A stretch of DNA of 64,000 nt, from contig NC_135759.1 in NCBI RefSeq assembly GCF_052425735.1, positions 1,116,001-1,180,000 of the forward strand, given 5' to 3'. A program made the translations under genes and the position numbers. This document shows, one piece after another, positions 3,038 to 52,043 of the stretch. This DNA is from Oculina patagonica (Eukaryota). The notes below the pieces were generated by a model. It was not told the origin of the DNA. It did no database searches and saw nothing but the letters and a program-made list of their open reading frames with translations. How positions within the stretch are numbered: position 1 is the stretch's first letter; each line of letters begins with the position of its first letter.

Positions 3038-3164
3038 TATTATACAAATGTATATTTTATTAAATTCCATATACAATCAGTTTTTTCCAATGTAAGAATA
3101 CTTCAGGTATTTTTAATCGTTTGTATTTTAACGCTAATATTTTTAACCATTCTATTCCTAGATA

Positions 3165-3366
3165 CCAATTTCACGCCAAAAATTTTGCGTAATGGGGCAT
3201 TCATACAAAAGATGAGCTAAAGTTTAGTCGGGAAAATTGCAGCGCTCGCAGCGAGGTGACGTTTTCAGTCCCATTTTAAAAAGACGTTTGTTTGTTATGA
3301 ATGATTTTATATTGGAAACATCTTAGTTTGTTTTCTACTGTGACTTTAAAAGGCAATTGGTAGATA
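3165..3366 (-). mobile_element. Short LINE ORF2 3' fragment
   Basis: Near-identical to 9450-9648, part of the LINE remnant (CERC..ETLTHLLYEC region). Confidence 0.75.
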
Positions 3367-5606: not shown

Positions 5607-5899
5607 CTCCCAAATTCGCTAGGCTTACGCTACCATCAGAGCTTGTTATCAGCCACTTCTACGATTAAAACAGAGTTACCTGGAAACCTTTGGTTCGTGT
5701 TATTCTTCTTAAATCTGTCGCGTGACATGTTTATAGATATAATGACAAGTGTCATTAATGTTTGTTTTATAAAGTTAAAAGTTATTAAAACCAGTAGCTG
5801 TGTTTTCATGCAAGCACATTTACCAATTTTTGCCTAAATGTTAAGTGGTGACCTTATTTCGTTTGCAGAAAGAAGCTAGTACGGCAGCATTTTGAGAAA

Positions 5900-8795
5900 A
5901 TGAAGGTAAGAGAACTGTTCAGTAATGAAACAATACTTAATATCTCCTGCTGACAGGCTTTCAGAATGGCATATTCAAAAAGGTTCGTTAATCGAGTTTC
6001 GAATGGCAAAAGAAACGAATTTTCGAAAGTGGAATCCAATTTTATCTACAGAATATACGTGTTTCTAAAAGAATGCCTCTTCATTCCCCTTCAAACGTTG
6101 AGCGATAAACACTATCTGTTGCCACAAAAAGGTTAAATTATCGCCATTAAAGAGAGGAGTAGGGAACGTTTTCAACTAATTTTGACATTGAACAACAATT
6201 CTTTTCCTTTTGTAAGAACGCAATAATTCTTACGAGTTTGCTTTGGAACTCGATCAACTAGTCATTTTCAGACTTGCCATTTAGATCGCTGTAGCGGCAA
6301 ATGTACCATCTAACTACCGCCAAATAAAATTAAAACAGTCACATGAACCTATTTGCCATAATGGGGTATTTAAACTTGGGCGTTTTTACTTAGTTGATTT
6401 TTTACTTTTATTTTATTTCCGTTTTTGGCTTTTTTAATCGATTTTTATTTTACGATTCATCCTAGCTCGTTGAACTTTAGAAAAATCTTTAAAAAGCCGT
6501 GCATAAATTCTTTCATACAGATTTTTTAATGAATTTGTTCTGTATTTTAACAGGTTTTTATTGAATTTGACAAAATGGTTCATAAAAATATTTCTGCTCT
6601 ATAAATCATTTGTCTTTTTACGTTTCGTAAGCCAAAGAACCTCTTCATCTGTTTAATTTCATTTTATATTTTTTTAGGTTTTAGTAAAGCCTGTTTTACT
6701 CACAGTTACGATGCTTATAATGATGGTCAGCCGTGTGAACTCCTTGCCCAACAAAAGTGAACGTGACGTCCGAGACATAGAAGCCTTTCCTAGAAGCCGA
6801 GAGGCAGGAGACCGAGATGTTACCAAAGGCAAGGGCCTCTCAAAGAACGATGAATATGGGCCTTCCGTTCATCCTTGTTTCAACGCCACGGTAAATCACA
6901 CTGTCACTACTCAAGAAGGTGAAGAAGTGCTATGTTTGGTGCCTTCCGAAAAGGAGCTGATGAAAGACCTTGAAGCCATCGGAGGATTCAACAGACATTA
7001 CGTCGCAGTCAACATTGAACAGGCCGAAAAAGATTTTGAAAATCCCTTCAAGCCAATTGCCAATCCTAATCCAAAACAGATGAGATGGAATAGCTACTTC
7101 TCCGGAAGGCGTCGACGCTCCATGGACGAGATGAAGAACATCCCCTAGCGAAGAAGGTCTTGAAAAAGATTTTGAAAATCCCTCAAGCCAATTGCCAATC
7201 CACCAAAACAGATGAGAAATAGCTACTTCTCCGGAAGGCGTCGACGCCAGGAAGAGAAGAACCCCGGAAAGTCTGAAAAAGAGCCCGCCAAGCCAACCAA
7301 AACAGAGAGAGCACCCGAAGGCGGAGCCCAGGAGAGATGAAGAACACCCCAGGAAGAAGGCGAAAAAGATGAAAATCCCTCAAGCCAAGCCAACCACCAA
7401 AACAGATGAGAAGCACTCCGGAAGGCGTCGAGCCAGGACGAGATGAAGAACACTCCCAGCGAAGAAGGGAAAAAGATAATCCCGCAGCCAACCACCAAAC
7501 AGATGAGAGACCGGAGGCGTCGACAGGAGAGAGAAGAACATCCCAGCGAAGAAGGGAAAAAGAAATCCCCAAGCCAAGCCCCACAAAACAGATGAGAAAG
7601 CACCCCGGAAGGCGTCGACGCCAGGACGAGATGAAGAACACCCCGCAAAGGGAAAAAGAGAAAATCCCCAAGCAAGCCACCTAATCCAAAACAGATGAGA
7701 TTTAATAGCTACTTCTCCGGAAGGCGTCGACGCTCCATGGACGAGATGAAGAACATCTCTCCTAGCGAAGAAGGTCTTGAAAAAGATTTTGAAAATCCCT
7801 TCAAGCCAATTGCCAATCCTAATCCAAAACAGATGAGATTTAATAGCTACTTCTCCGGAAGGCGTCGACGCTCCATGGACGAGATGAAGAACATCTCTCC
7901 TAGCGAAGAAGGTCTTGAAAAAGATTTTGAAAATCCCTTCAAGCCAATTGCCAATCCTAATCCAAAACAGATGAGATTTAATAGCTACTTCTCCGGAAGG
8001 CGTCGACGCTCCATGGACGAGATGAAGAACATCTCTCCTAGCGAAGAAGGTCTTGAAAAAGATTTTGAAAATCCCTTCAAGCCAATTGCCAATCCTAATC
8101 CAAAACAGATGAGATTTAATAGCTACTTCTCCGGAAGGCGTCGACGCTCCATGGACGAGATGAAGAACATCTCTCCTAGCGAAGAAGGTCTTGAAAAAGA
8201 TTTTGAAAATCCCTTCAAGCCAATTGCCAATCCTAATCCAAAACAGATGAGATTTAATAGCTACTTCTCCGGAAGGCGTCGACGCTCCATGGACGAGATG
8301 AAGAACATCTCTCCTAGCGAAGAAGGTCTTGAAAAAGATTTTGAAAATCCCTTCAAGCCAATTGCCAATCCTAATCCAAAACAGATGAGATTTAATAGCT
8401 ACTTCTCCGGAAGGCGTCGACGCTCCATGGACGAGATGAAGAACATCTCTCCTAGCGAAGAAGGTCTTGAAAAAGATTTTGAAAATCCCTTCAAGCCAAT
8501 TGCCAATCCTAATCCAAAACAGATGAGATGGAATAGCCACTTCTCCGGAAGGCGTCGACGCTCCATGGACGAGATGAAGAACATCTCTCCTAGCGAAGAA
8601 GGTCTTGAAAAAGATTTTGAAAATCCCTTCAAGCCAATTGCCAATCCTAATCCAAAACAGATGAGATGGAATAGCTACTTCTCCGGAAGGCGTCGACGCT
8701 CCATGGACGAGATGAAGAACATCTCTCCTAGCGAAGAAGGTCTTGAAAAAGATTTTGAAAATCCCTTCAAGCCAATTGCCAATACTAAAACTTGA
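5900..8795 (+). CDS. Gene 2: secreted paralog of gene 3 with a tandemly amplified 46-aa G-RRRR unit and no cystine-knot domain; frame broken at 7141-7690, probably by low-quality sequence
   Basis: Coding exon 5900-5905 (ATG AAG|GTAAG) and acceptor tttttag|6678 give MKVLVKPVLLTVTMLIMMVSRVNS. The N-terminal ~140 aa are nearly identical to gene 3. ORF 7695-8795 is about 8 units. Confidence 0.6.
7026..8783 (+). repeat. 138-bp coding tandem repeat, about 13 copies (8 clean, ~4 degraded, plus the first)
   Basis: The unit encodes EKDFENPFKPIANPNPKQMR(F/W)NS(Y/H)FSGRRRRSMDEMKNISPSEEGL; the ATGs at 7695 and 7833 are 138 bp apart. Confidence 0.92.
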
Positions 8796-8929
8796 GTGTA
8801 AATTATGATTTCAATCGATGAATTAAACTGGTTTACACGTATGCAAGCAAGCACTTCTGTTTGTTGTTTTCGTGTTTTCTATTGTTATTTTGCAGTTTTT
8901 GATATCCACCTCTGAAAATTATACTAAAA

Positions 8930-10330
8930 CATTTTTTTTTATTGGTGAATTAGACTTTACAATATTAATTATTGAAAAGAAGACGAACAAAAAAATACAA
9001 TATTGATAATACAAAAAAAATTACACAATTTCACTACATATAAGTACAAGTACAAAGTTTGTTTACAACAGAATGTTTTAAATACAATTTTTAGCGGAAA
9101 CAAGGGAAAAAAGGAAAAAAATAGGAAAAAAGGCGGGTGGCACATTCTAAGTGGAAACATTTTGAGGCGGTAGAGTGCGTAATGTTGCCCATTTTGATCT
9201 AAATTTCGACAAGGTGTTGTTTTTAAAAGCGATTCTGCTTTCACAAAGGATTTTGTCTTTGAGAACGAGATAAAAAATTTTAAAGCTTGGGGTGCTGTTA
9301 TCCAACCAAGCTTGGAAGATGTGATATTTTCCGATGATTAGAACATGGTTTAAGGCGTAAAACTTAGTACAGTCTGGTTTATAGCCGTACAGAATATCTG
9401 TCAAGTTTGAAGAACAATTCTCCGATCGTTTCTCGTTCCACCAAATAACAATTTCACGCCAAAAATTTTGCGTAATGAGGCATTCATACAAAAGATGAGT
9501 TAAAGTTTCGTCGGGAAAATTGCAGCGCTCGCAGCGAGGTGACGTTTTCAGTCCCATTTTAAAAAGACGTTTGTTTGTTATGAATGATTTTATATTGGAA
9601 ACATCTTAGTTTGTTTTCTACTGTGACTTTAAAAGGCAATTGGTAGATAGCTTTCGGGGATAAGTTTTTTCCGACTAGTTCTAGTTCTATATTTGGGGAT
9701 TTAAGAGCTTTCAAAACAAAATGTTCGCGAGCGATTTTGGCAGTGACATTAGAGGGTGTTAGGTTATCTCTGACAGCATTATTGGAGGGTATTTGCTGAG
9801 TATTTAAAAGGGAGTTTTTCCACCCACTAGGGATTGCAGAGAGGAGGCCGAAATATTTTTAAAAATTCACATTTAGACCATATTTTTTTTGAAATTCGGC
9901 TCTGGACAAGAACCTACCATCTTCCAGAAGGTTGCGTATTTTAATCACACGCTTTTGATACCATGTCAGAAAAAAGATCGGTTTTCCATCTATTCTAATA
10001 AATCGGTTGTTCCAAATGATCTCATTCCCGTATTCATCAGCAGATGAGGGGTCTGTAGAGTGTATCTCCTGCCAGGCCGAAAGTATTTCTTTGTAGAAGG
10101 AGGGTAATTCTGAAGGCAGATTTAAGTCATGTATATCAAAGTTACATTCAAAAAGGAATGTGCCACCGACGTGGGTTGTGGCCAAGGAAAAGGCAGCGCA
10201 CCATTTACTATCTCCAGCTTCACATAATCGCTTTGCCCACGCAGCCTTAAGAGATTTATCCATCATAACAAAGTCAACCATGTTAAGACCACCTTAATCA
10301 AGAGGACCAATAAGAGTGTGCCGTTTCACT
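8930..10330 (-). mobile_element. 5'-truncated, degraded L1/Tx1-like LINE (3' part of ORF2 plus 3'UTR)
   Basis: ORFs 9859-10281 (SLKAAWAKRL..EIIWNNRFIRI) and 9147-9557 (CERC..ETLTHLLYEC) are homologous to the C-terminus of ORF2 at 39195-42884. Confidence 0.85.
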
Positions 10331-12751
10331 TAGAGAAGGTAGTTCAGGATAAGATACAATGCACTGTCCTCAACAATGACCAGCTTGGTAGGCCACTATC
10401 TTGTTGTGTTGTTCTAATGCATCAGCAGTAGGGGAGATGTTCTCAAGGGTCCTCCCTTCTGTGCAAAAAATAACTTTCTTGGCACCATTGGCTCCTTGGC
10501 ACGGACTTGTCTTAATATTAGCTAATATTGTTCAGCAGCTTAAATACTATCACCATGCCAAATTTGGTGCTTTTACCCCGAAGTGCACAATACCAGATTT
10601 TTTTGCAGCATATGGCTGGATTTGACTTCACTCGCCAAAATACGCGCGCGACATGAACATATAGAATTAACTGACAAATGACAAACGGGCAAAAAATTAA
10701 CAAGCAAATGACCCAAATTTTTGACCGATATCTGCAGACGCTTACAAATATTTTATTGTAGACAGTAGTATATTTGTTCAAATTTTTGACCGACATCTAC
10801 AGACGCTTGCAAATATTTTACTATTAACAGCTAGTCGTATATTTGCTCTGACACTTACAAAAGCACGGTAGCATTCTGCTAAGCGTGATCCAAAAAGAAG
10901 GACGCTTTCTAGAACTTAATGCTCACGGGTTTTTTCGTACACTAAAACAATTTACAATTTGCACCAAAAACTACGACAGACGTCCACGTGAGTCACGTCG
11001 GATGTCAATCAACTTCTGTCGAAACTCTGAGACCACCTCAAGGTTTTTTCTTTTAAAACTTTCGATATTTGGTTTTCATCTACTGATATTAACGTTACAT
11101 TAATTAAAATTGCATGTCGATAGCGTGTCAAAATCCAATTAAAATCAAATACTTTATTTTATCTTTTGTATTTCCCTTGGCACACAAGACATAGTAAGAC
11201 CTTTTTTGTGAAAACTAATAATTACTGTTTTTTTTTCTTTGTGAAAGCAAAATTGTTTTATTCCGAGACCACCTTGAAGTTTTTTAGGTAGTAACATACG
11301 GTTTGACCTACGTTGAGTTAAGTGTTGATAGTTTAATTATTTATGTCTATCCCGAACATCGCACAAAGGCTGGTAAAAAAGGAACTTTGGGCTGGCCAAT
11401 ACCAGCCCGATCACTCAGACTAAACTTCGCCCGAGCAACAATGTTAAATTGCGTTACACCTTTTAATTTAAAAAAATATATATGAATTTTATCAAATTAG
11501 CCTGGATCACCCTCAAAAATACGCTACTGTATTTAAATATGCGGCTACTTACGTATTCATGCACGTATTGGTCTTCAATTTTATTTAGCGCTTTGATACC
11601 GTCCCATTTAACTTCTGAATTCGTGGAAGTTTTGCAGTTTTTCCGGCTCGTAAAATGATTTTTTTTCCCCGTTGCTCTGGACTCCCGTCATTATTTGAAA
11701 AAATTTCCGCCCAAATTGAACTGCTTTGTTTGAAGACGGAAGCTTTTCGGGTGAAAGGGCCGGTAAGCGATGTTTGTAACCAATAGTGACCAATGTTACA
11801 ACGCCTACAGACCGGTGATATATCGTGTTTATAGCGTGGTCCAGCTAACACCGAAGACTGAGAGGCATCTTCAGACCCACCGGTCCGTACGGGATTTATC
11901 TATCTTAGGTAAGTAAGCAACTCAACAAACGATAATTTGGAGTAGAAAACCTTTCACTAATGCCTTAAACTAACAAATTGCAAGAAACTTTTGACGAGTT
12001 GTAATTTGCAAGACACTGTTTTTTGTTAGGTCAAATTTTTGTATTATTTTATTTTCAAGGATATAAACCAAAATTACACCAACTTCTTATTATTTAATGA
12101 TCCTCGACTCACCTAAAATTTATCATTATTTTGAAGCTGAGAAATTATCGTATGAAACAAAGGACAAGAGAAGCCCTTATAAAAAAATCACTGGTCAGAT
12201 CAAATCATGACCTTAAGATGATTAGTTAGGAACACTTCAATTCGAAATTCGTACATTCAAACATGTTTGCTGAAACAGTATCGATCGCATTAGAAGATAT
12301 GTTTCATTTTTTGAGGTTCATTTCTTGTTGAGTACATAAGCTATTTACATAATCCTTACTCATTACCGGCTAAGTTGCAATTAGCTAGCTTAAGTTGTTT
12401 GAAATGCTATTACTAAGTAAGTAAAACAAAATTAATTTGTATTTATTCAGCTCATGCTAAAAAAGATGCACATCCCAAGACCAAGAAAAAAAAATTTGTA
12501 ATCTGTGTATTTTAAAATGATCTGTTCATAAGTTCTCAAAGGGGACGTTAGTGGTCATAAAAGGTGTTTCAAGCGAACAAGGTTGTTTATAGATAAAATG
12601 ACAAGTGTCATCAATGTTTGTTTTATAAAGTTAAAAGTTATTAAAACCAGTAGTGGTGTTTTCATACAAGCACATTTACCAATTATTGCCTAAATGTTAA
12701 GTGGTGGCCTTATTTCGTTTGCAGAAAGAAGTAAGACAGCTTTTTGAGAAA

Positions 12752-15028
12752 ATGAAGGTAAGGGAACTGTTTAGTAATGAAACAATATTTGATATCTCCT
12801 GCTGTCCGGCTTACCAAATTGCATATTCAAAAGGTTCATGAATCGAGTTAAGAATGGCAATAGAAACGCATTTTCGAAAAGGAAAACCAATTTTCTCCGC
12901 AGAATATACATGTTCCTAAAAGTGTGCCTTTTCCTCCCTAAACATTGTGCAACGAAACACTATCTGTTGCCACAAGAAGGTTTTATCGCCATTAAAGAGA
13001 GGAGTAGGGAACGTTTTCAACTAATTTTGACAGAGAATGTTGAACAACAATTCTATTCCCTTTGTGAGAATGCAATAATTCTTACGAGTTTGCTTTGGAA
13101 CTCGATCAGAGAGCCATTTCCAGACTTTCCATTTAGATCGCTGTAGCAAATGTACCGTCTAACCGCCGCCAAGAAAAGTCACATGAACCTTTTTGCCATA
13201 ATGGGGTATTTAAACTTGGGCGTTTTTAGTTAGTTTATTTTTTTTTTTTTTGCCTTTATTTTTGGCTTTTTTAATCGATTTTCATTTTACGATTCGGCCT
13301 AGCTCGTTGAACTTATTTTTACATTTGCTTGCTAAAATATTCAAATCGACGTGGTATATTTTAAGCGCGACCCATACTGAGTTCGAAATCAATTTGGCAG
13401 TCCCAATAAAGAAAACAATACGTCAAGTTGTAAAAACTAATACATCGGTGAATACTAATTTTATTACATTAGCAGGGATTATTATGTTGACAGATTAATA
13501 AATTTTCTTTTGTTTTGTTTCACAATATACGATTGTAAGGGCGCATAGAAAAACATTAAACGATTTCTTCAATTTTTCGGAAGGAAAAACCCTATAAGCG
13601 GATGTGTAAAGACTGATTCAGAGGCAAAAAATTTATTACACCTGTGCACCGTTCGATTATGATAGCACTTGTGAGGTCTTTTTTTAATCAAACAATGTTT
13701 AATTTGTTTGATTTGTACTGACGGCGCCGCAGTTGTTTGTTCAAAACTGCAATGTTTTCACAATTAGCGATCGAACTAATCAGAACGGTATGTTTTAATT
13801 TTAACCAATCAGGAGTAAAACTAATGCCAGCCGCGTCTTGTCGCAAACGTATTTTCCCGCGCTTGGCAGCACATGTTGCGTTGTTTGATTGGTTCACTGG
13901 GTGTGACCGATGAGTTATAGTTTCTTTGGGTGTTTCAGTGCAATGCAGTCTAATCATCTCAAAAAAACTTTAGAAAGCCGTGCATAAACAGTCTTTTTAA
14001 AATTAATGAACTTGTTCTGTATTTTAGCAGGTTTTTATTGAATTTGACATAATAGTTCATAAAAATATTTCTGCTCTAGAAATCATCTCTCTTTTTACGT
14101 TTCTTAAGTCAAAGAACCTCTCCATCTGTTTAATTTCATTTCATATTATTTTCAGGTTTTAGTAAAGCCAGTTTTACTCACAGTTACGATGCTTATACTG
14201 ATAGCCAGTCGTGTGAACTCCTTGCCCAACAAAAGTGCACGCGACGTCCAAGACATGGAAGCCTTTCCTAGAAGCCGAGAGGTAGGAGACCGAGATGTTA
14301 CCAAAGGCAAGGGCCTCGCACAAAATGATGAATATGGGCCTTCCGTTCATCCTTGTTTCAACACCACGGTTAATCACACCGTCACTACTCAAGAAGGTGA
14401 AGAAGTCCTATGTTTGGTGCCTTCCGAAAAGGAGCTGATGAAAGACCTTGAAGCCTTCGGAGGATTCAACAGACATTACGTCGCAGTCAACATAGAAAAG
14501 GCCGGAGAAGATTTTGAAAATCCCTTCAAACCAATTGCCAATCCTAATCCAAAACCGATATCATGGTCAAGCAAATTCACCGGAAGGCGTCGACGCTCCA
14601 TGGACGAAAAGAAAAACACCTTTCCTAGCGAAGAAGTTCATGGCCGTGTTAAAAGAGCTGCGAATGTTGGGCTTCAGACCTGTGAACGTACAGGTACCCA
14701 GACTTCAGTGGGGTTTTATCAACTCTGCGACGAATGCTGGTGGATCAGAAGGTTGCCAGACGATAGGTTCCCTCGGTACATCAACGAAAAAATCTGCGGA
14801 GTAGATGGCAACAGTGATTCCACATTCAGTGGTCAGTTCTGCAGCGGACGTTCCGACGGTTTTTGTCTTCAGCGGTCGTTTACGCAGGATCTTCTGGTCA
14901 GAACCAACCAGTATGTGCGGATTTCGTCACCCGACCCAAAATACAGCGTGGTCTACAAGCAGGTTTGGAAACAGTACGCCCAGGAAATCAGAAGCTGTTG
15001 TCAATGTCAGAACATGTCGCCGCCTTAG
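12752..15028 (+). CDS. Cystine-knot family gene 3 (subfamily I), intact prepro-protein
   Basis: Coding exon 12752-12757 (ATG AAG|GTAAG) and acceptor tttcag|14156. Signal peptide, HPC..LC, GGFNRHYVA, RRRR and RVKR sites, then a 9-Cys domain LCDEC..DRFPRYINEKIC..IRSCCQC. Confidence 0.88.
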
Positions 15029-16149
15029 ATCTCTATTTTTTTCTAGCCTTGGGGAAAGGGGGTACTTCCAGGGAGTTTGGGTACGCAGGCTCTATCGACC
15101 GGCCTTGCCCTTTAGTCATTTTGTCATAACATATCAGACTTGATATTTTAAGATCTTCACTTACTTCATCTTGTAATTGTCTTTAATCGCATTTACTCAA
15201 ATTCAATCCTTGGGTTTGTTTTTCATTTACATTTTAAAATTATGACCAATAATAATGTATACGCCATGTTGATACGTAAAATTAGACTAAAAGCCCAAAT
15301 CTATAACAATATTCTGAATTATGACTGCTCTAAAACCTCTTCCTCTTAGGGCGGCATATATCGGTGTAAATGATAGCACACCACCATCCCCCGCCCCCCT
15401 TCCCCACAAAGCTCACTGGCAGTGTGTAGCATTGCTATTCATAGCGTAGCGATGAGTAGCTTCTTAAGTTCCGGTGTGTATTTAGTTAGGATCCGTGAAA
15501 ATCCATGTAAAACGTCCATTTAGCAACCTTAGAAAAAAGAAGTTTTACTTAGTTGGCAAACTCTTCAATCAAAGGTTTAGATAACCGTATTGTTTGCTGA
15601 GTTTGGGCTGGCGCGAATTGAACCAATAACTACCTAAATCGAAGCAAATTGTTAGATTGATTGAAACTAGAAAGTAAAGGGTTAAATTAAACTTATTCTA
15701 AATATTATCTTCCCCTGGCACTATAGCCACTTAATTTTATTTTAGGCCAACACGGATTGACCATAATGTTGAATCTCTTAAATTAGTTTTGAATACCCGG
15801 AAAGTCCTGCTGTACTCCACTGACTGTTTTCATATTGATAATAAATATTGTCAAGACATGTTTATTATTAAAATGAATTTTGTAAGTCAAGATTGTTAGC
15901 TTCTTTTAATAATGCTTGTTACCTTAGCCTAAGAACATGCCCTATATACCACCAAGAAGCTATTTTAAACACAAGTTATGTTATCTTCCCTGATTGCACC
16001 CATAGTCCCGCATCTTGAAACCGTATTTATTTCAGACCAAAATTTGTCATTTTTTTCAACCCTATTTCAGGCCAAAAGGCACTTCTAAAGAGAAGAATAA
16101 TGGAAAAAAGTTTATTTTCAAAACCACAGGGAATTTGAGACCAGGGTAA

Positions 16150-16435
16150 AAGGTAAAATCTGCGTTCGAGCCAAGTGGCCCATGAGGCCGGAGCTTATCT
16201 GGTTTCAGTAGCATGAAGCAACTAGGAGTATTTTTACTCCCCCTGAATAGGATACTACTCCATTGCAGGTTCCCCTAGCATTAACTTCGCCTGTACCCAT
16301 TTATATACCTGGGTCGAGTGAGGCACTAGTACTGTGATGGTTAGGTCTCTTGCCCAAAAACATAACGCAATGATCCCGGCCAGCGCTGGACGGTTCGATC
16401 TGGAGTCCAGCACGCTAACCATTAGGCCACCGCCA
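16150..16435 (-). mobile_element. tRNA-derived SINE
   Basis: The reverse strand begins GGCGGTGGCCTAATGGTTAGCGTGCTGGACTCC (A-box-like), followed by a ttgggcaaga..cccaggtatataaatgggtac core. Related copies at ~57925-58210 and ~59945-60235. Confidence 0.75.
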
Positions 16436-16597
16436 TTCCCTCGAGTCCAGAGAGCACAAACCATATCCTATTTCAGAAATAACTGAACTGAGCAAAAAAA
16501 GTACTTAGTCATCTTACAACAGTTACAAGACTAAAGTTACGGCGCACGGGGCCCGATGAATTAAATATAGAAAAATATTACCAGTGTTGTGTCAGAG

Positions 16598-16714
16598 AGA
16601 CTATTTTTCAAAAATTCAAGGCTGATCAGACTGGTTTGAAATTTTAAAACTCTTCATTAATGATCCCCAATTTTAAAACAAGTCTGATCAGCCTTGTATT
16701 TGTGAAAAAGAGTC
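16598..16714. repeat. Imperfect hairpin/MITE remnant
   Basis: caaggctgatcagact ... agtctgatcagccttg inverted arms. Confidence 0.7.
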
Positions 16715-16834
16715 TGTTAAAATTTCATTGTTGATTCTGATTTACAAAAATATCCAGCTACAATTTGCTCCTGTTTGTCCGAATGTTCCTTGCCTTGTTT
16801 ACCCAAAGACTCTGATATTGTATCAGTCAGAATT

Positions 16835-18853
16835 TTACCACACTTGACATTCGCAGCAGCTACGAATTCTCTGAGTGTAAGGCTTCCAGACTTGCTTGTA
16901 AGCTTTGGGAAACTTATCAGGATTAGGAGAAGGAACCTCTACATAATTTTCAGTCTTTACCAGAAAATCTATCAATAAAAAACGTTGAATACACATTCCT
17001 TGATTATTATCACAGCACAAAGTGTCCTCCTTTAGACTTGGTATTTCATCGCTGCATGAAACCTCGTTTATGTATCGCGGGAAACGATCGGAACTCAACC
17101 GAGATATTCGTTGACATTCGGAACACAAGCGAATCATGCCGAGCTCTGTTCGATCACCGCGATTAATACAACGAGTCTTCTTTGAGCTCACTATGTTATT
17201 TTCCAGGTCTGTATCGCGTGACACAGCCCTTTTGTTGCGTGACACTGCAGACAAAAGGTGACTCCATATGATAGGGAAAGGCTTGGCTTCTTTCCTGGGA
17301 GATGTCGGGGGAGGAGGAGGGAGCAGACTGGCGAATTTGTCAGCTTCCTCTTTCGTTACCGCTGCGTAATGTTTGTTGAGGCCTCCGATGTCTTTTAGCT
17401 GCTCTTTAAGCTCTTCTTCTGTGGGAACCATGCACAAAATTAAACTTGTACCGGCGAGGATTGTGCCATTGGTCATAGATCCTTTGCAAGGGTGGTGACG
17501 TCTTTCGTGATCACTGCGGCTCAGTACTACACGCGTGATTTGATGCGTAGATGAAGAGTTCGCGAGTTCACGCGCATGCATCGAAACCACAATAAATGAA
17601 GTTGTTAACAACAGAATTACCTGAGTGAATGGAAGGAACAAATTTAAGGTTAGTTTTCATGTTTAAAATGTGATAAAAATGAAGATAAAGATTTGATTTG
17701 TGCGAGATTTTACTGATTAAAAGCTGATAAAAGAAAATTTCAGGAACCGTGAGAAATTAAACAACAAAAAACCAACAGATCGCCAACAAACAAAAGAAGG
17801 AGACAAAATGAAAATTGGTAACCGGTGGGAGTAAATCACTGATCGGTAAAAATTATGTTTCTAGGCAAAATAATTGCTAAAAGTAATAACTGCAAATGTA
17901 CACGGATCCAGAGTTTCAGAGTTCCGGTCCAAATTCAAAGAAAAAGTGAGCACTCATTAAGTCAGACCATTGTTAAACATCGCAAAACACAATAGCCTGA
18001 CTTAATGAGTGCTCATTTTTCTTTTGAATTTAGACCGGAACTCTGAAACTCTGGATCCGTGTATTGCTAGTTACTTCACAATATTCATATTAAAAACAAT
18101 TTCGACGTCCATGTTTGCGGACATTTAATATCGTTAACAAGTAAAAGTGTAGACTTTATCCCTGACCCATTACCAAGTGGTAAGCAACCCATAGCATGTT
18201 ACCCCCCGGTACATAATTTTGTAAGGACTTTCAGCAACTTGTCTGTGTAAAAGTTCATTTTATACACCTAAGGTTGAAAGGGTCACAGTGAAAAGAAAGA
18301 TTCTTGCTGGCAACACGAGGACAATAAAACAGATATTCGAACTCTCGAACCCACTTTTAGATCACTGCAGTCCGTATTTTGAACAAAAAAGCCAAAGAAA
18401 TTGGACCACCAATTGTAGGTTTAAGGGGCTATGTCATGGATTTTACCAAATTTTTAAACAGCCAAAATTTATATTTGTACTGTAAGAAACCTAAAAATAA
18501 TGGTCCATTTTCATTAACAATTGCCATATTAGAGCATTGAAACTGTAAACAAGCGTCTTTGGCTGCGGATGGCTCAGATGGAAATGGATTGCGACTTGAA
18601 AAATTAAGGCTTAATTTTTCAAATGGTTTTTGCGTGTCTTCAAAAAATCGGTATTTTTTGCAGTGGTTTGATTCCTCACAGCAAATTACGGTTATATCTT
18701 CCTTAAGATGTTCAAAGAGAATGATTTCCATGGGTTAAGTTGGCTAGTACTAATTTCAGAGCAGTTTAGACCAAAAATCTGCTAAATCCACGTGACGTAG
18801 CCTCAATAAAGAATATTGTTATCGCAGTTTATCTTACTTACTTGTGGATGCAT
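16835..18853 (-). CDS. Cystine-knot family gene 4 (subfamily I), intact
   Basis: Coding exon 18853-18842 (ATG CAT CCA CAA|GTAAGT) and acceptor actcag|17620 give MHPQVILLLTTSFIVVSMHA. HPC..LC, GGLNKHYAA, RNKR site, LCSEC..DRFPRYINEVSC..IRSCCEC. Confidence 0.88.
17901..18061. mobile_element. Palindromic MITE in the intron of gene 4
   Basis: About 70-bp near-perfect arms cacggatccagagtttcagagttccggt / accggaactctgaaactctggatccgtg, flanked by TA. Confidence 0.85.
18423..18803. mobile_element. Probable MITE
   Basis: Imperfect terminal inverted repeats ggggctatgtcatggattt / aaatccacgtgacgtagcctc. Confidence 0.5.
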
Positions 18854-19241
18854 TTTCACTCCATAAATCACGACAATCATCTAAAATCATAAGTTAAAAC
18901 ATGGACGAAGAAATGAATTTAAAATGACCTTATTATTATTACCCTCAGATCTCGTTATTTCACCTGCAAGAAGTCTTTACAGATCACGTCAACCTGGAGG
19001 AAGTACGAACAATGACAATAACACACATTATGGATCAGCTGGTGAAAGAACAAAAAAAGGGATTGCCTTAGTAAACAAAAACGACAGATAGGATTTAACG
19101 TGGGTAAATGGATGATTAAAAAATGTCATTTTGTTTGATGATCTAAAAGCTTGTACTCAATCAGCACGTGTCAAACCCACGGCCTGCTGATTTCCTATCG
19201 TGAAAGATTTCAGTACTTTTATATAAAATGATCGCTATCTT

Positions 19242-19517
19242 TAGAGCGGTTTTCACTTGAGTTTCGAAAGTAATTCTCGTTTACTTTGGTTTTGCATTAT
19301 TGCGCTTAGTGATTGGCTCAAAAAACTCGCGCCATTTTCTCAGCCAATCAGAAGTAAACCAAAACCAATCTCGCGCATGTTTTCCCGCGCTTCGTGCCGG
19401 CTAGATGTATTTGCTTTGAGTTTTGCTTGGTTCACTGGATTGTCTGTGTCCTTTGTGATTGGCCAGAGTGATTGCTTTGGTTTTGGTTTTTACGACACTC
19501 AATTGAAAACTGCTCTA
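19242..19517. mobile_element. MITE
   Basis: TIR tagagcggttttca / tgaaaactgctcta; internal gattggc/gccaatc motifs. Confidence 0.7.
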
Positions 19518-22500
19518 TACGTACAGTGAATGAAAATTACTCCCTCATTGTGCCCAGAATTTGCTAGTACGTCATGCTACGCAAGCTTCTAATCACACAA
19601 TTCGGCTCAAATTACATTTTGGCTTTCGAAATTTTACTGCAGTTAAACATAGATATTTCGGCAACACGAAAAACGGTGTTGTTTAAATGTGCGTGCAAAG
19701 TCTGATAAATGGCCGGGAGTGAATGTGCCAGCCCTTCAAACTCGAAAGGTGACTGGCTCAGCTAAAAATCATTACAATTTTGAAAAATCATGTAGCATTT
19801 TTAATTTAAAGAATTTCGTGTGGTTTCCCACGAAGTAACAACTGAAATCAAACGTAAATATCATTTACATATAATAAGACGGAATTCTTCTAACTAGTTT
19901 TAGTACAGGTCTTAGGAAGTGCATCGGTGAAAAATGAATTTCCTGGATTTCAAGTTATTGAGTGATTACCAGTTGTACAAACGATAGTCGACTGAAAACG
20001 AGTCGACGGCGACTCACGATCGTGTTCGTGGTCACTCGGCAATGTTCGGTGTCTCATAATGACGGCGATAAAAAATAGACAAGGTAGTTGACATTACCCT
20101 CCACATTTGTTGAATTTCAACAATTAAAAGAGTTGTTTGGATGTATCGCCAAATTTTCCAAGAACTAACTTTGAAAGAATGTATGGCAGGCGATTAATTA
20201 GGGCGACGAGGTGTAATTTACTTGTAAAAATTCTTTTAGCCAAGAGCGCATCGTTCTGCTTCAAGTTAAAACTGAACTTGAAAGCGTTGACTCATGTGCA
20301 TCAAACACGTAGTAGTTGAAAATCGCAGATTTTATGATTCTAGATATATTCATTTCTGTCTTTACTTTGAACACTTCATTACACTCGTAAAACACTGTGA
20401 CAGGTAAGCCCACAAGGACAAACACATCTATGTCAAGTATTTAAAACAAATAAAACTGATCGATAAGACACGCTAATTCCCAGCCCGAGAAAAGAAACAC
20501 GGTTAGAAATTGTGAGGATGAAATTAAACGAGAAATCTTAAATTTACGTATCTTTGAAACACTAACTAATATTGGATCTGTATTTAGTCTTTGTTTATAA
20601 TTACCTCTTTCGTTTGCAAAGCCACTTTGGGTGCATACTGTATATGTAATCATGGTGATTTTATGATTTTAGAGTAAATTAATGACGTACGTGAAGAGTA
20701 CATGGGGTGTATAATCTCAGAAAACAAGGCTCAATTTGGAAAAAAAAAATCTTCTACTGAGCTATTATTAGAAGAAAAATCAGTGATTAATTTTAATTTT
20801 AAAATCATCATTCTTTAAGGTTCTATTCACAGTCAGCTCCCGTAAACATCCTTTTCCTCCCCGTTTCATGTTTTCTTAACCAACCCAGTTATTCTTGTTT
20901 ATTTCATATTAGCCGGAACCATTCTGGCTTAGATGCCTTTTACGGAAGCCGAGACTGGAGGAACTGCTGAAAGTGTGATGATTTTGAAGGTTGAAATTGA
21001 GGCGTGAATATCTCTCGTAAGCGATCTTATGAAAACCATAAATGACCTTATTTGTATTAAAACGGTTTTAAATGCAAATTTTTAACTTGTTTTGCTCTAA
21101 ATGCCTGTGATTTCTTACTTTATTTAAATTACTATATGCTACACATAGCTTCTTGATAAAGATTTACCTTGCTGAAATTAATCAAAATTGGTATTTTGAG
21201 GACTTAATCGAAGTACAAGCCGCAAACTGTTTATGTGTATTTTTTATTTTTATTCGTTTTAACGGGGAATTCCCAAGGTGTACGCCTTCCCAATACTAGG
21301 GGGCCTTAAGCACTTTGTGACGTTTGCTGACATGTAGCGTCGCTAAGCACCGGTATCAGACCGGTAAATAAACATTGTATTTCCTGACCTTTAAAATGTC
21401 ACGCGATTTGCAAATAGACACAAAATTAGTACGATAATTGTCTAGAATACTAAAAATATACAGTATTAACTACTTATCTTTAAAAAATTCCCGTTTCTTT
21501 AATTAGCAAAAAATTTAAATGTTAAGACTCGTCAGCAGATTGTTTGAGAAATTAATGCTGGCCGAAAAAGGTAGCCGTCACATGTATTTAAATTTAGCGT
21601 GGAAGTAATGTTGATTTTTAACTTTGGCGGACAAACCAAACCAGTGGGGGAAAAAGAGTAAATTAACTACTACAAATACATATCTATAACTAGACTTTCT
21701 CAAAGTATAGGCAAGTCTAATCTAGAACGGAGTTATATTGATATAGATTACGTTGCCGATATCACTTTCGAGATATTTCGTGGCACTATAATATATTATG
21801 TTGTTTGTTTTTAAGCAGTTTTAGTGGACCATTTATATGTCATGAAAAAATTTCAGACAAAAATTGCAGTCAGATTTCGAACATAGAAATAAAAAATGAT
21901 AACAAATAAATAAGAAGTTTTGTAGGGAGAGATAAAAGGCAGTATTATAAAAGTGGTTGGCATTAGTGACGGCGTTTATTCATGGCGTGATCATAAAATG
22001 TAGTCGCCTACGCTGTATGCCGTTTAGACAATCTTTTAAAGGCATCTTAGTGAGCGAACAAAGTTAAAAAAACAAAGTTATAAACATTATCTGTATTAAA
22101 CATGCTCTCATATATGACCATCGTCATATGCCAAGGTCTAGCCGCATATTATATAGCCCAATTTTAGTGGTAATTGTAACTGAATTACTCTCAACTTCTA
22201 TTTATAAAATATATATAGACTTGACTGAAATAACTTTTGCCGTGGTGACATGAAACACATCATCACATTTTCACTTGCCAACAAAACAGTATACAAACAG
22301 GAACTATAATATGACGTTAAGCCATATGTACTTTCTGTCAAAGAAATTACCTCTTCAGCAAAAATAACAGGAACATAAACTCGCTGTAACCATAACGCCC
22401 TTTAATGCGCTGAAAGGAAATGAGTCCGGAAATCGCGTCAACAGCTCCAGACAGCCGTTCCGCGTATTCGCATTCTTAAATGTATATTTTCAAAATCATT

Positions 22501-22784
22501 TAAAGTACAATAGTACATAAAAGCAATATAAGTAATATTAATGGTTTTCTTTCTGCAAAGTTAAGAAGGTTTCAAGAAGTATTTCTGATAGAAATTATGG
22601 TAGATAAGCTAAGTTTGAAGAGCGAAAAAGCAAACAAAGTAATCTCGCCTATTTCCTCGTTTTCGATATCTGTCCACCTTCATGTTTGCCCTTCCGTCGT
22701 AACCAATATAGAACAATGATGTAAAAGCGTGTAGCGGCCCTGGAGATTACGTTGAAGGGACTGCCCCGGGTGATTCTTATGCGG

Positions 22785-23826: not shown

Positions 23827-25189
23827 ATGGACACTAAAATACTGGTAAGTGCCTACTCTTCTCAATGTCAGACATACAATTAAAAAAAAAAAACAGTAGG
23901 AAAGATTGAGAAAACCCGTAGTCATTTTCCGGAGCCTGAAAACCTCCGGAGACGGGAAAAAGCAAACATACTGATGCAATAAATCAGTTTGGAGTAAATA
24001 AGGCTATTACATATGTACCACAGTACTATACTTTTAAACAAGAAATCCGTTTCATTTGAAGATGAATCTAAAACACGCCCATTTTATTTCTTTATTTTAA
24101 TCTATTAAACTTCCGTCAGGAAAGGCCGGAAACTGTATAAGAGCACAACTTCGAAACTAGCACATAATGAGATAAATTGGTACTGATCGTTTTTACGGTC
24201 TAAAAGGCTATGTAAATGAATGCAACTTTGGTCAGAAGGGACAATATGACAAAACGAGAGAAATGAAAGAAACTCTCCCAAAGAAATTGTAACGGCTATA
24301 TTAGAGGAAAAAAAATATTTTTATCGGAAGTAGAATGCAAATAGATTAGGAATGAAACGGGATTAATCATCAATGCCAGAAGAGAACCTGGCTGAATCTA
24401 ACTAGAAAAGCTGTCAAATTCCTTTCGGGAATTCGAAAAACACATCATAAAGACGGCGCGAATGGTGTTAACAGTAAAAATCATCTCTCTCTTTTTCTTT
24501 CTTTTCAGCTCGCTCTAACAGTCCTGGCTGTAATCAGCTGCCTGCAGTTTACAACAGTCAGTGGTCTTCCTACCGCCAGAGAAGAACTTGGTTCAGGGGC
24601 TGAAGAAACAGATGGCAACCAAACGGACTGGACGATTTCACCACTGAGACTACTCCGCGAAAAACGCCAAGTGTGCAAGTCTTACAGCCGTGCACAGCTA
24701 GTGAGAAAACTCAACAAACTAGGCACTAAGCTAGGAGCAAGCTCGTATGGCGGTTACAATCGACGATACATGGCGATTACCTGGAAGGAGGCAAGGAAAT
24801 TTCCTAGTCTTGTAACAACTGTGGGCGCGTCACCACTGAACGCTTCCGCGATTCAGCTCAACCTCCCCTATAAACCCCCCTCACGAGTGGGTACTTTGAC
24901 GTCACGCGCAAACTGTCACACAACGGACGGTGGTTTGTTACGCATGTGTAGTGCATGTCCTGCAGTCACGTTCCTGGGTCACGACAGGATTCCGAAATAC
25001 ATCAACGAGGTCACGTGCGGGCAAACCATGTGCTCACATGGAGTGATTGGCATGTGTCAGAATGCCGTCATGCATCAGCAGTTTTTGTATAAGACAGGAA
25101 GGTGTGATCCACGTACAGGATACGAAGAAGTATTGCCTTACACCCAGGCAATACGAGTATGCTGTGAATGTCTGGTCTTTCCCAGTTAA
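23827..25189 (+). CDS. Cystine-knot family gene 5 (subfamily II, type A), intact
   Basis: Coding exon 23827-23844 (MDTKIL|GTAAGT) and acceptor ttttcag|24509 are in frame with ORF 24671-25189. Signal peptide LALTVLAVISCLQFTTVSG, REKR site, 11 Cys after the signal. Confidence 0.9.
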
Positions 25190-28839: not shown

Positions 28840-30301
28840 TCATGGAGAAATGGAGAAAATCAGGCATTTACAACACACTCGTATTTCCTGAGTATAAGGA
28901 AACAATTGCTCGTATCCCGTATGCGGATCACACTTTCCTGTCTTGTATAAAAACAGCTGATTCAGCACAGCACTCTTACACGTGCCGTACTGTTCTCGCG
29001 ATGAGCACAAGCCTTCTTCACACGTGACTTCGTTAATGTATCTCGGAATCTTGTTGGGTCCCAGGTCCGTGACTGCAGGGCATTCAAGGCATCCGCCTTC
29101 CGTTATGTGACAGAGAGTGCGTGACTTTAGTATGCTCGGCCGCGTGGGAGGGCGAGATGGGAGATTAGGAAGGTAGAAGGCTTTATGTGGCGACGCGCTC
29201 GCGTTTGTAACAAGGTTGGGGAATTTACGTGCTTCTTCCCAAGTAAACGCCATATATTGGGCACTGTAGCCGCCATAAGACTGTGCTCCTGGCCTATAGC
29301 CTAACATTTGTATTATCTGAGCTTGGGGGTAAGGCTTGCACCATGGCTTCTTTCTGTGTCCTTTTCCGCGGCCTACTTTGAGTGGAAAAATCGACCAGTC
29401 CGTTTGGTTGTCATCTTTTTCTAGAGAACCAAACTCCTCTGGGACGGTGGGAAGACCGTTGACTGCTGTAAACTGCAGGCAGCTGATAACAGTCGTGATC
29501 GTCAAAGCAAGCTGCAAAAGAAAAAAATTATAAAGAAATTACAAATTAAATTACAAAAATAAAATGATCAAAAATTACAAAGTAATCCATTTACAAAATA
29601 GTATCATTTAAGGTGCGTGCGAGGCAAATTCTGCCCGAAATTCCTCGCATCCTTGTTAAATTTAATTGTGCAAAGGACTATTTTGTGTCGCTATATGCAT
29701 TTTTTTAAATCTTGCCTGTTCATTACTGTCCATTCCTCTTTCTTCTTTTGCTTTCGCTTGTGGGACTAGTTGACTGCATTTAAGCCTGGTTTTCACTAGC
29801 GACGCAAGCACAAGCGCAAGGATAACAGCTCTTATTTCACCTTGAATACGGCTTCGAAGCAAGCAAAAGCACAAGCGCATTGCATTTTGATGCTTGTGCT
29901 TGTGCTTGCGATAAGCACAAGGACAAGGGTCAAAATTTGTCCTTTTTGCGTGTTTGCGCTTATGCTTGCACTTGTGCTTGCGTCGCTAGTGAAAATCAGG
30001 CTTTAATGTTCACAGGTGTGGCATTTTCACGTTTATATCGGAAGGTACTTGCTGCCATTAACTCTTTTAATTCTCGAAGTCCAATGGATTATAAACGCTG
30101 ATGAGCGATGTTTATTGGCAAATTCCACTTGAAACGGATTTAACTTAAGAAATTGATATCAAAGTCCTTTTCTGAGGCTTAATGTCATTGACTTTAATAA
30201 TTATTTGGATTACGGTAACATTATTTAATAAGGCCCCAGAAAATATTTTGTTTTTCATCCATTGAGAAGAGAAAGAGACTTACCAGTATTTTTGCGTCCA
30301 T
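28840..30301 (-). CDS. Cystine-knot family gene 6 (subfamily II); intact ORF, no recognisable promoter/exon 1 of its own
   Basis: Coding exon 30301-30284 (MDAKIL|GTAAGT) and acceptor ttttgcag|29511; VTDLGPNKIPRYINEVTC..IRVCCKC. Confidence 0.85.
29783..30002. mobile_element. PIF/Harbinger-type MITE in the intron of gene 6
   Basis: About 30-bp TIR agcctg(g/a)ttttcactagcgacgcaagcacaag, TTA duplication. Confidence 0.8.
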
Positions 30302-31478: not shown

Positions 31479-33533
31479 CTACCACACCATGCATTTACAG
31501 CACACTCGTATTTCCTGGGTATAAGGCTCCAATTCTTCGTATCCTGCAGAATCACACCGTCCCGTCTTGTAATAAAACTGCTGACGCATGATACCAGTTT
31601 TACAAGTACGGGTGGACTCTTTCCCCGAGCATGACAGTTGGCCGCATGTGACCTCGTTGATGAAGGAGGGAATCTTAAGATCACCCAGGGACGTGACTGT
31701 AGGGCATTCACTGCATATGCGCTTGTAACTACCGTCCGCTGTCTGGCAGTTTTCGCTTGACATCAGACTCTTCGGCTGTGAGGGAGCACGAAGCGGGAGA
31801 TTGCGAATTGGGGAGACTTCTTGTGGCCACCAGCTGGTAGTTGAAACAAGGTTGGGGAATTTACGTGCCTCCTCCCAAGTAAACGCCATGTACAGCGGAT
31901 TGTAGCCATAATGCGGCGCTCCGAGAATATTCAGCTTTGTTATTAGCTGTGCTTGCGTGTAAGACTTGCACCAAAATGGCCAAGCTCTCGGGATCTGTTT
32001 TTTTTGGGGGTGCGGTTTAAGCGGATAAACTGCCCAGGCCGTTTGATTGCCATCTTTTCCCAAATGACCAACTTTCCCTCCGGGAGTGACAAAACTGCTG
32101 ACTTTTGTAACGCGCAGGCAGCTAATCACAGTCATGATCGTTAAGGAGAGCTGCAAACATGAAAATAAAGTGGATTCAAGGTATTTTTGTCATTAGAACT
32201 TTCAAGGTTACGAAGAGAATCTCGAGTCGAAATAAGCTGTTCATTGTTTAATATGCAGACATTACTGCCAATATTTTGACATCGGTTATTGGCTTTAAAT
32301 TTAAGAGCATTTTCAGCATTCATCTCCTGTCATTAATTCTTTTCTTATTTTTTCATCTCCTACAATATAGTTAGGAGAGTTATAAGTAGTTCCTTAAAAT
32401 TCAATTTTGTAATTATATTAGAGCACGGATCTCTGGAAGACCATCAATTGATGAATGTGATTCCGTGGATAAATAAATAAGTTTCTATCTTGACTCTTTT
32501 TAGGTCTGTACTTTCTTCTTTTCGCTCTAATTTTGCCTGAATGAAGAGTTAACGACAGTTATTAAGCTACATCAGTCTTACAAAGCTACATCTGTGTGAC
32601 ATTTTCATTGTTTTCTTAGTATGCAGTAGCTAATCACCGTGCTGTTGACAAAGCCGGAAGACTGACAAGAGTAAATTAGCATCCATAACAAGGGCATGCT
32701 TTACTGGCTAACTCCGGTTGAAACGGATTTCCACTTCAAAGATATAGTCCTGCAGTAGTAATTTCTTAACCCTTGATATGCTAAACCCGGATTTTTCCAG
32801 GATTTGGAGGAATGGCCATTCCACCACTTATGACGTCACCAATTTACACGTCAGCAGATTTTTGTGATGTGCTCATTATAGAGTTTGGATAGATCTTTCC
32901 ACAGGAGTGTCCATCTCGAATATTGACTGCATTCCGACAGAGCTAATCGAAAAAACCGTCATCAGGTTTTGTTGTAAAATTGGTGCTAAAACAGGCCAAT
33001 ATACCCGCACTTGATCATGGTCTCCTTTCCAGGGATTTCCATTGATTAAGATCAAAAATTTTCAGGCCAGTAGAAGGGGTGCACAGAGTAAAAGATAGAG
33101 AGAATAAGAAAGCAGAGAAAAACGAAAAGGAAAGGAGCAAGGAAAAAAATCAGAACGGTTCCGCAAAAAAAGGTCCAAATTTTGGCTTATGCGCATGCGC
33201 CAAAATAAAATATTGTACATTTTTACATGGAAATTTCATCAAAAATTTACTGCAGTGTCAGAAAGTGCATTTCTAGCAAAGTTTAGATAAATTTAAGACC
33301 GTAGAGCTAAGAAAATTTAATTAACGGTTAAAAAACGTGTTTTTGGAGTAATTTCAGCATATTAAGGGTTAAGCCATAATTTCATTAACTCTAAAACTAA
33401 TTGTAACGATATGTTTATTTTCTTCCGGAGGTACTCCTGCCCCGGAAAATGACTAAGTGCTTTTTTTTTACCCATTAGTTTTGTTAACGTCTGCAGAGAA
33501 GAGAAAAGTACTTACCAGTATTTTAGCGTCCAT
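31479..33533 (-). CDS. Cystine-knot family gene 7 (subfamily II), intact
   Basis: Coding exon 33533-33516 (MDAKIL|GTAAGT) and acceptor gtttgcag|32150. Confidence 0.88.
32770..33368. mobile_element. piggyBac-type MITE in the intron of gene 7
   Basis: TIR ccctt(g/a)atatgct, TTAA flanks; absent from the paralogous intron at ~37430. Confidence 0.8.
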
Positions 33534-51281: not shown

Positions 51282-52043
51282 TTAACTGGGAAAGACCAGA
51301 CATTCACAGCACACTCTTATAGACTGTGTGTAAGGCAATACTTCTTCGTATCCCGTACGCGGATCACACCTTCCTGTCTTGTACAAAAACTGCTGATGCA
51401 TGACGGCATTCTGACACATGCCAATCACTCCATGCGAACACGTGGCTTGCCCGCAAGTGACTTCGTTGATGTATTTCGGAATCCTGTCGTGACCCAGGAA
51501 CGTGACTGCAGGGCATGCACTACACATGCGTATTAAACCACCGTCCGTTGTGTGACAGTTTGTGCGTGACGTCAGAGTGCCCACCCGTGTGGGAGGTTTA
51601 TAGGGGAGGTTGCGCTGAATCGCGGAGGCGTTCAGTGGTGACGCACCCACAGTTGTTACAAGACTGGGGAATTTCCTTGCCTCCTTCCAGGTAATCGCCA
51701 TGTATCGTCGATTGTAACCGCCATACGAGCTTGCTCCTAGCTTAGTGCCGAGTTTGTTGAGCTTTCTCACAAGCTGTGCTCGGCTGTAAGACTTGCACAC
51801 TTGGCGTTTTCCGCGGAGTAGTTTGAGCGGTGAAATCGTCCAGTCCGTTTGGTTGCCATCTGTTTCCCAGTCAGCCCCAGAACCAAGTTCCTCTGTGGCG
51901 GTGGGAAGACCGCTGACTGTTCTAAACTGCAGGCAGTTGATTACATGAGCTAAAGGTCCTGTTTTTTTGTTGTTGCTGTTTGCTTTATTAATTTTTTTTC
52001 TATATTTTCGCTGAATTTGTAATTTCTTGGACAGAGAGTTCAT
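51282..52043 (-). pseudogene. Gene 10: 5'-truncated type A paralog fused to upstream non-coding DNA; reading frame still open
   Basis: Homology to gene 5 starts at ~51944 (GTA ATC AAC TGC). The acceptor, ATG exon, exon 1 and TATA are absent. There is an in-frame ATG at 52043. Confidence 0.75.

Follow-up and report, generated by a model that had tools for sequence, protein, structure and literature searches.

A tandem array of linker units in a truncated cystine-knot ligand paralogue from the stony coral Oculina patagonica

The DNA analysed here is a 64,000-nucleotide stretch of contig NC_135759.1 from the stony coral Oculina patagonica (hereafter the window; all coordinates are window positions), in which a single family of secreted cystine-knot proteins has no fewer than 11 paralogous genes. 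Two of these, both on the forward strand, are central to what follows: gene 3 (12752-15028), an intact paralogue of the parental type, and gene 2 (5900-8795), in which a single linker segment has become a long tandem array. Gene 2 opens with a mini-exon, ATGAAG (exon 1, 5900-5905, forward strand), whose GT donor stands at 5906. After it come an intron with GT...AG ends (5906-6677, forward strand) and the 5' part of exon 2 (6678-7025, forward strand), which encodes the rest of a predicted signal peptide and a conserved N-terminal pro-region. The pro-region contains the motif HPC..LCLVP..GGFNRHY, whose residues are invariant among coral orthologues. The frame of exon 2 is continuous with that of exon 1, and the joined exons give MKVLVKPVLLTVTMLIMMVSRVNS, with a hydrophobic core at residues 3-20 (Kyte-Doolittle 11-residue mean of up to 2.6). 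The N-terminus that begins in the mini-exon, MKVLVKPVLLTVT..., is the same one found in the GenBank and RefSeq models of the gene pair. The mini-exon is conserved with exon 1 of gene 3 (12752-12757), which likewise consists of the 6 bp ATGAAG and is followed by one long exon (exon 2, 14156-15028). The introns of the two genes show 12.1% mismatch, and that of gene 3 carries an extra 644-bp insertion (13315-13961), probably a mobile element.

Downstream of the pro-region lies an array (7026-8783, forward strand) of a 138-bp, 46-codon unit, EKDFENPFKPIANPNPKQMR(F/W)NS(Y/H)FSGRRRRSMDEMKNISPSEEGL. Analysis of the register gave 14 full units and a 39-bp partial one (8745-8783), close to the roughly 13 amplified units counted in an earlier reading of this DNA from its letters and open reading frames (ORFs; the sequence-only reading). 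Unit 1 is of the W/Y type, units 2-12 are F/Y, unit 13 (from 8469) is W/H and unit 14 (from 8607) is W/Y. The clean part of the array (7680-8744, forward strand) falls in an open frame listed as 7695-8795. Tandem Repeats Finder reported a period of 138, 8.0 copies, 99% matches and no insertions or deletions (indels) for 7680-8788, and further copies with 16-18% indels for 7128-7680. The five units 8-12 are base-for-base identical, and the clean units differ from one another only by TT/GG (F/W) and T/C (Y/H). Because the units are identical at the DNA level, the expansion is very young.

The stretch between the end of unit 1 and the start of unit 7 (7141-7679, forward strand) is corrupted and contains an in-frame stop (7146-7148). 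When 7026-7778 was aligned to clean units, we obtained 751 matches, 213 deletions and no insertions, and the only substitutions were the two that define the W of unit 1. T accounts for 135 of the 213 deleted bases, while it makes up 23% of the clean unit, and the T content of 7141-7679 has fallen to 7.6%, the lowest in the window. Mutational decay would have brought substitutions along with the deletions, so natural decay of units 2-7 was ruled out, and the ~5.5 units together with the stop at 7146 are very probably a defect of the assembly consensus. The stop, on whose falsity the sequence-only reading depended (there placed at 7148), is thus most likely false, given the deletion-only, T-biased differences from clean units. 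The diagnosis of a defect is supported by the neighbouring sequence, where a contig of the independent draft assembly GCA_044670265.1 matches window 9779-22699 at 99.64%, with only nine gap positions in 12.9 kb. No short-read contig falls on 7146-7615, which is weak evidence since 6864-7145, a segment that is certainly real, is also uncovered. Deletion-only, T-biased loss of this kind may be an error signature recognisable in other tandem repeats of the genome assembly.

Short reads give a separate view of the array. Two DNA runs hold the unit as a 168-nucleotide contig, at depths of 123 and 396, next to single-copy depths beside the array of 9.8 and 36.2 in the same runs. Since 168 = 138 + 30, this contig represents a closed cycle at k = 31. 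The corresponding copy numbers, ~12.5 and 10.9 in the two DNA samples, are rough ratios from individuals that may differ, too rough to show a difference in copy number between the samples; they exceed the ~9 clean copies of the assembly and lie near the 14 obtained when corrupted units are counted. The 5' sequence specific to gene 2 and its intron are present in DNA contigs at single-copy depth.

The unit is also found in RNA. Run X15 (organism A) contains the F/Y unit cycle at a depth of 54, and run X17 (organism B) contains, at a depth of 15.6, a W/H unit cycle in which DFE also has its F changed to L. Relative to the flanking repeat, the array has a depth of 0.26 and 0.08 in RNA, compared with 0.011-0.024 in DNA, and no RNA contig was found on the gene 2 intron; together, the depth ratios and the empty intron show that carried-over DNA is not the only origin of the signal in RNA. 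No RNA contig covers the start of exon 2 that is specific to gene 2 (6678-6863), though the DNA runs give one there, and none joins the start of exon 2 to the array. Libraries biased towards 3' ends, low depth or another transcript start are possible reasons for the missing 5' RNA.

At its 3' end the array abuts a fragment of a high-copy interspersed repeat (8785-8931), which contains ATTAAA at 8822-8827 and has a depth of 2,500-36,000 in the DNA runs, roughly 500-1000 times single copy. The stop codon of the array frame (8793-8795, forward strand) lies in this repeat-derived sequence (...PIAN-TKT-stop). Other copies of the repeat extend leftward into unrelated sequence, so that 8784/8785 is a breakpoint inside the element and not the end of the element. 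No listed short-read contig bridges the junction at 8783/8785. The adjoining sequence (8932-9100) is present in about 20-100 copies, judged by short-read depth. A cystine knot is encoded in gene 3 and in nine other neighbours; tblastn with gene 3 and gene 4 found no cystine-knot coding sequence between 8843 and 14189, and gene 2 indeed lacks the knot, as had been noticed from the sequence.

The homology of genes 2 and 3 extends over 5728-7162 in the former and 12584-14642 in the latter, with 86-90% DNA identity. The nearest other coral locus (L001) is only ~81-83% identical to both, which makes the duplication specific to the Oculina lineage, and comparison with coral orthologues identifies gene 2 as the derived copy of the pair. 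The sequence-only reading had called gene 2 a recent duplicate of gene 3: the duplication stands, while its recency does not, since a synonymous divergence (dS) of 0.14 and an intron divergence of 12% indicate that the duplicate is not very recent. The ratio of non-synonymous to synonymous divergence (dN/dS) between the two genes is 0.41 over gene 2 6678-7025.

The order of parts in gene 3 is signal peptide, conserved pro-region, one linker unit with RRRR, RVKR and the cystine knot. Its pro-region is modelled with a predicted local distance difference test score (pLDDT) of 84-93. The linker reads ...DFENPFKPIANPNPKPISWSSKFTG-RRRR-S...RVKR and is predicted to be disordered, with pLDDT <50 for residues 117-154. 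In ~33 coral orthologues the linker is single-copy, and its residues W126, S128, G132 and R134-136 are nearly invariant. One of these is the Gly that precedes the furin site, so that in the intact coral genes, too, the single-copy pro-peptide may end in an amide. Across the stony-coral linkers (gene 3 14510-14660 and orthologues P0002-P0032) the pattern DFENP..PI..W.S...G-(R/K)RRR-S is conserved despite the predicted disorder.

Within the linker, the peptide core has changed from PISWSSKFT in gene 3 to QMR(W/F)NS(Y/H)FS in gene 2. Ten of 27 nucleotides differ, almost all of them non-synonymous, so that six of the nine residues are replaced while W, S, F and G-RRRR are kept. Outside these nine codons the two genes differ at 26 of 399 nucleotides (6.5%), with a dN/dS of 0.36 and a dS of 0.14, and the core dN is 0.60. 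The difference between the core and the rest of the exon (Fisher p = 1.6e-5) shows that the core change, which the sequence-only reading had pointed out, is real; the core also departs from the intron rate (p = 8e-4) and stands out in a sliding-window permutation (p = 0.0016). The new core sequence occurs in the window only in the array, ruling out gene conversion from another paralogue in the window as its source.

For the parent family, a Pfam scan of gene 2, gene 3, gene 4, 34 orthologues and nine further paralogues returned no family at threshold; three paralogues of the cluster had only sub-threshold IL17 matches (E 0.014-0.19), and neither Noggin (PF05806) nor Spaetzle (PF16077) was reached by the parent gene 3. 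A sequence profile search of the PDB with the intact paralogues also returned no match. The nearest language-model clusters of the intact paralogues are arthropod proteins with Noggin, Spaetzle or NGF domains, and the AlphaFold model (predicted template modelling score 0.62) best matches IL-25/IL-17F, PTTH (5aoq) and Noggin (1m4u, 7ag0), at E values of 0.05 or worse. Because there is neither a Pfam family nor a PDB sequence match, placement is possible only through weak similarity of fold and features, which hints at a Trunk/PTTH/Noggin/IL-17-like cystine-knot ligand without formal membership of any of these families. Trunk orthologues have been described in the stony corals Stylophora and Orbicella (PMC6660194).

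Besides gene 2, at least 10 further cystine-knot paralogues with the motif RFP/IP-[RK]YINE..C and a C-terminal CC.C form a tandem cluster. Paralogues were listed at 1073-2217, 14189-15028 and 24671-25189, and on the reverse strand at 16838-17641, 28840-29517, 31479-32156, 36151-36858, 45922-46596, 51282-52043 and 53150-53824. The upstream ORF of gene 1 (1073-1903) encodes an extremely basic sequence (RRSRRK and RKRRKG are examples of its runs), and it overlaps the knot ORF (1867-2217) in another frame, suggesting an intron or a frameshift. Elsewhere in the window, an intact-looking ORF of 1229 residues (39195-42884, reverse strand) with endonuclease and reverse-transcriptase hallmarks and an adjoining 303-residue coiled-coil ORF (43562-44473, reverse strand) are probably a young long interspersed nuclear element (LINE). 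Fragments of similar LINE-like elements lie at 9147-10281 (reverse strand), and 3162-3366 is 98% identical to 9445-9649.

We next turn to relatives of the array and to public annotation. No relatives of the array were found in 5.8 billion or 1.84 billion proteins; queries of two units and of the N-terminus of gene 2 returned no proteins within the length limits. A full HMMER search of the 1.84 billion representatives with the eight-unit ORF returned only two unrelated repetitive proteins, an ESM-atlas search with the array returned only generic repeat proteins (scores of 0.75 or below), and the core DNA had no matches in JGI metagenomes. Pfam matches of the repeat ORF (Baculo_LEF5_C, IGPS and others) were rejected as repeat-inflated noise, as no stretch passes alone. 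Look-ups of the exact product for an independent contig over gene 2 found none, the GCA_044670265.1 contig stopping at 9779. The array ORF is absent from the protein collection, and the array is non-coding in both public annotations. In RefSeq, gene 3 has a model of its own, and a correct one (XP_078356838/9): the gene 3 ORF 14189-15025 is exactly the C-terminal 279 residues of this 292-residue protein (LOC144641681 isoform X2). The GenBank model KAL9982347.1 (P0001) instead joins the N-terminus of gene 2 (to NIEQA) to the C-terminus of gene 3 (from GEDFENPF), spanning window 6711-7035 and 14513-15025. Since the change from one gene to the other falls at precisely corresponding positions and would take a 7.5-kb GC-AG intron, we regard this chimera as an artefact of homology-guided modelling.

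If an mRNA with exons 1 and 2 were translated, it would give a secreted polyprotein of ~770 residues which, with the corrupted units read as clean, would consist of the signal peptide, a pro-region of ~95 residues and 14 units. Furin-type convertases would cut after each RRRR to give 14 fragments, and a carboxypeptidase and an amidating enzyme would trim these to 41-residue peptides running from SMDEMKNISPSEE to NSYFS-amide, with a predicted isoelectric point of 4.8. This product is deduced from the established chemistry of convertases and amidating enzymes. Cnidarian aminopeptidases trim until they reach Q, X-P or X-P-P, and cuts at D or E are possible (Koch and Grimmelikhuijzen, 2020; PMC7523074). 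Applied to the unit, this published rule halts trimming at S9-P10, leaving a 33-mer with five acidic residues, and a cut after the last acidic residue, E20, would leave a 21-mer starting with N-P. A 9-mer beginning at pQ33 would have to pass four X-P blocks, and an X-Pro dipeptidyl peptidase working from the end left by furin would find the dipeptides out of register. The release of a (K/pQ)MR(F/W)NSYFS-amide of 9-10 residues, as proposed in the sequence-only reading, is therefore not what the cnidarian rule predicts, which is a peptide of 33, 21 or 41 residues instead.

The overall architecture that had been read from the sequence, with a predicted signal peptide, a conserved pro-region and many copies of a peptide followed by Gly-RRRR, does hold. 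In the cnidarian survey (PMC7523074), preprohormones were defined by at least three Gly+basic sites, at least three similar peptides and a signal peptide. Gene 2 has eight G-RRRR sites in the clean frame 7695-8795, or 14 with the corrupted units, and where its units vary at all, they do so at F/W and Y/H alone. A signal peptide is predicted on the frame of the array, a frame broken at 7146 as assembled, most probably by the consensus defect. With that signal peptide, the locus would by its sequence formally qualify as a cnidarian multi-copy preprohormone. Established cnidarian neuropeptides are ~6 residues long and free of acidic residues, and longer candidates containing them were doubted in the same survey.

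We lean towards reading gene 2 as a cystine-knot ligand paralogue, specific to its lineage and truncated, that carries a young coding minisatellite; it is transcribed, and furin may cut its product into fragments that have no selected role. What remains of the gene 3 copy is exon 1 with the intron, the signal peptide, the pro-region and, with the first furin site, the disordered linker, of which the 138-bp segment has expanded head-to-tail to 14 in-frame copies. Base-identical copies, and a dominant unit type that differs between the two organisms, suggest that this expansion proceeded by unequal crossing-over or replication slippage. The last copy ends at the breakpoint inside the high-copy repeat, from which the stop codon and ATTAAA come; the knot would have been lost after the array existed, through a repeat-associated rearrangement. 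Several observations weigh against this account. The 142 codons of unique sequence have stayed open despite 12% neutral divergence, with a probability of 0.065 when a single neutral lineage was simulated at the substitution and indel rates of the intron; dN/dS outside the core is 0.36; the core has changed faster than the intron (p = 8e-4) with W, S, F and G-RRRR kept; and the array persists and is present in the RNA of a second organism. They are compatible with a degree of selection on what the sequence encodes and on the peptide itself, and favour a functional precursor, yet the signs of constraint and directional change are moderate and could predate the loss of a complete gene 2.

That gene 2 is a working precursor of ~14 amidated ...(F/W)NS(Y/H)FS-amide peptides, and with it a new hormone or neuropeptide gene derived from a growth-factor pro-region, seems to us possible and rather doubtful. 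Its formal standing under PMC7523074, the intact gene structure with an ORF retained at p ~0.065 under neutrality, the accelerated non-synonymous change of the core (dN 0.60 vs. dS 0.14) around a preserved W/S/F/Gly-RRRR frame, the unit in RNA libraries of two organisms and a Gly before RRRR that is nearly invariant in the whole coral family all speak for such a precursor. However, no transcript joins the signal-peptide exon to the array (RNA contigs being absent at 6678-6863), the units are DNA-identical, unlike those of old precursor genes, and the array has no homologue in the libraries searched. The 46-residue unit, the furin-type RRRR and the mostly acidic predicted products of 21-41 residues also argue against it, and the last unit is cut off by the repeat junction, which fits a recently broken gene too. 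A peptide gene caught at its birth, in which the knot would have been shed, the linker core re-tuned by positive selection, the segment amplified 14-fold and NSYFS-amide secreted, is a tentative suggestion on our part. We judge a recent accident, leaving a transcribed remnant or a proto-gene, to be more likely than an established signalling-peptide gene. It is improbable that the array gene still ends in a knot, hidden by a mis-join at 8783/8785 or reached by splicing into gene 3, with the repeats as a linker of variable length that is excised as a growth factor matures. The length of the linker might be tolerated, as it lies between two furin sites and is predicted to be disordered (pLDDT <50); the junction is unbridged by short-read contigs, the assembly is poor inside the array, and in KAL9982347 a public model does link the two genes, the N-terminus coming from gene 2 and the C-terminus from gene 3. 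But that chimera looks like an artefact and RefSeq has a separate gene 3, the phase of any donor within the unit would not match that of the acceptor of gene 3 exon 2, and no second knot at ~90% identity was found in the window or in the 90% protein cluster. An array that is wholly an artefact of assembly, an over-expanded or invented repeat, we consider highly improbable. While 7141-7679 is clearly mis-called and the exact number of units comes from one assembly, the closed 138-bp cycle at ~11-12.5 times single-copy depth in two DNA samples, the variant unit cycle in the RNA of the second organism and the W/F and Y/H variants in the assembly establish that the array is real, as the sequence-only reading had argued from the variants.

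The origin of new peptide-signal genes is poorly documented, since old precursors have lost their history. Here the steps can be read: a parent gene 5 kb away, a duplicated segment, a changed core, amplification and loss of the knot. Should gene 2 yield an active product, it would be a dated, lineage-specific case of a growth-factor pro-region turning into a multi-copy precursor of amidated peptides. One would then have to ask if amidation and activity also extend to the conserved Gly-RRRR pro-peptide found throughout the coral family. If gene 2 is only a transcribed remnant, it is a caution for script-based discovery of preprohormones, because by sequence the locus would clear the whole formal screen. 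The analysis also flags two errors in public data, the corrupted stretch in a chromosome-scale assembly and the chimeric GenBank gene model.

How does gene 2 compare with known systems? Among Trunk/PTTH/Noggin-like ligands and the related IL-17/NGF/Spaetzle fold class, represented here by the intact neighbours, the arrangement of exons matches that of gene 2, as do the signal peptide, the pro-region and the first furin site, but the ligands carry a C-terminal knot after a basic cleavage site whereas gene 2 has no knot domain. The Bombyx PTTH precursor has extra small peptides between basic sites as well. Like a coding minisatellite (variable number tandem repeat) in a secreted protein, the array consists of in-frame, head-to-tail units of near-identical DNA (period 138, 99% matches), and a dominant unit type that differs between organisms suggests turnover by unequal exchange. 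The yeast alpha-factor is made from a polyprotein precursor whose units end at a Kex2/furin-type site, like those of gene 2. A defined X-Ala dipeptidyl peptidase takes off the alpha-factor spacers; in gene 2 the register of X-Pro pairs, counted from the furin-made N-terminus, does not fit such stepwise removal. Cnidarian preprohormones such as those of Antho-RFamide, GLWamide and XPRXamide (Koch and Grimmelikhuijzen, 2020; PMC7523074) share with gene 2 a signal peptide, predicted in gene 2, and tandem similar peptides, each copy followed by Gly and basic residues and preceded by acidic and X-Pro sequence. Their units measure roughly 6-20 residues, however, compared with 46 in gene 2, where the four-Arg, furin-type site is inherited from a growth-factor precursor, a conserved pro-region of 100 residues comes first, the copies are DNA-identical and the products would be long and mostly acidic. 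No FS-amide family appears in that survey (PMC7523074), and the predicted gene 2 peptide would end in FS-amide.

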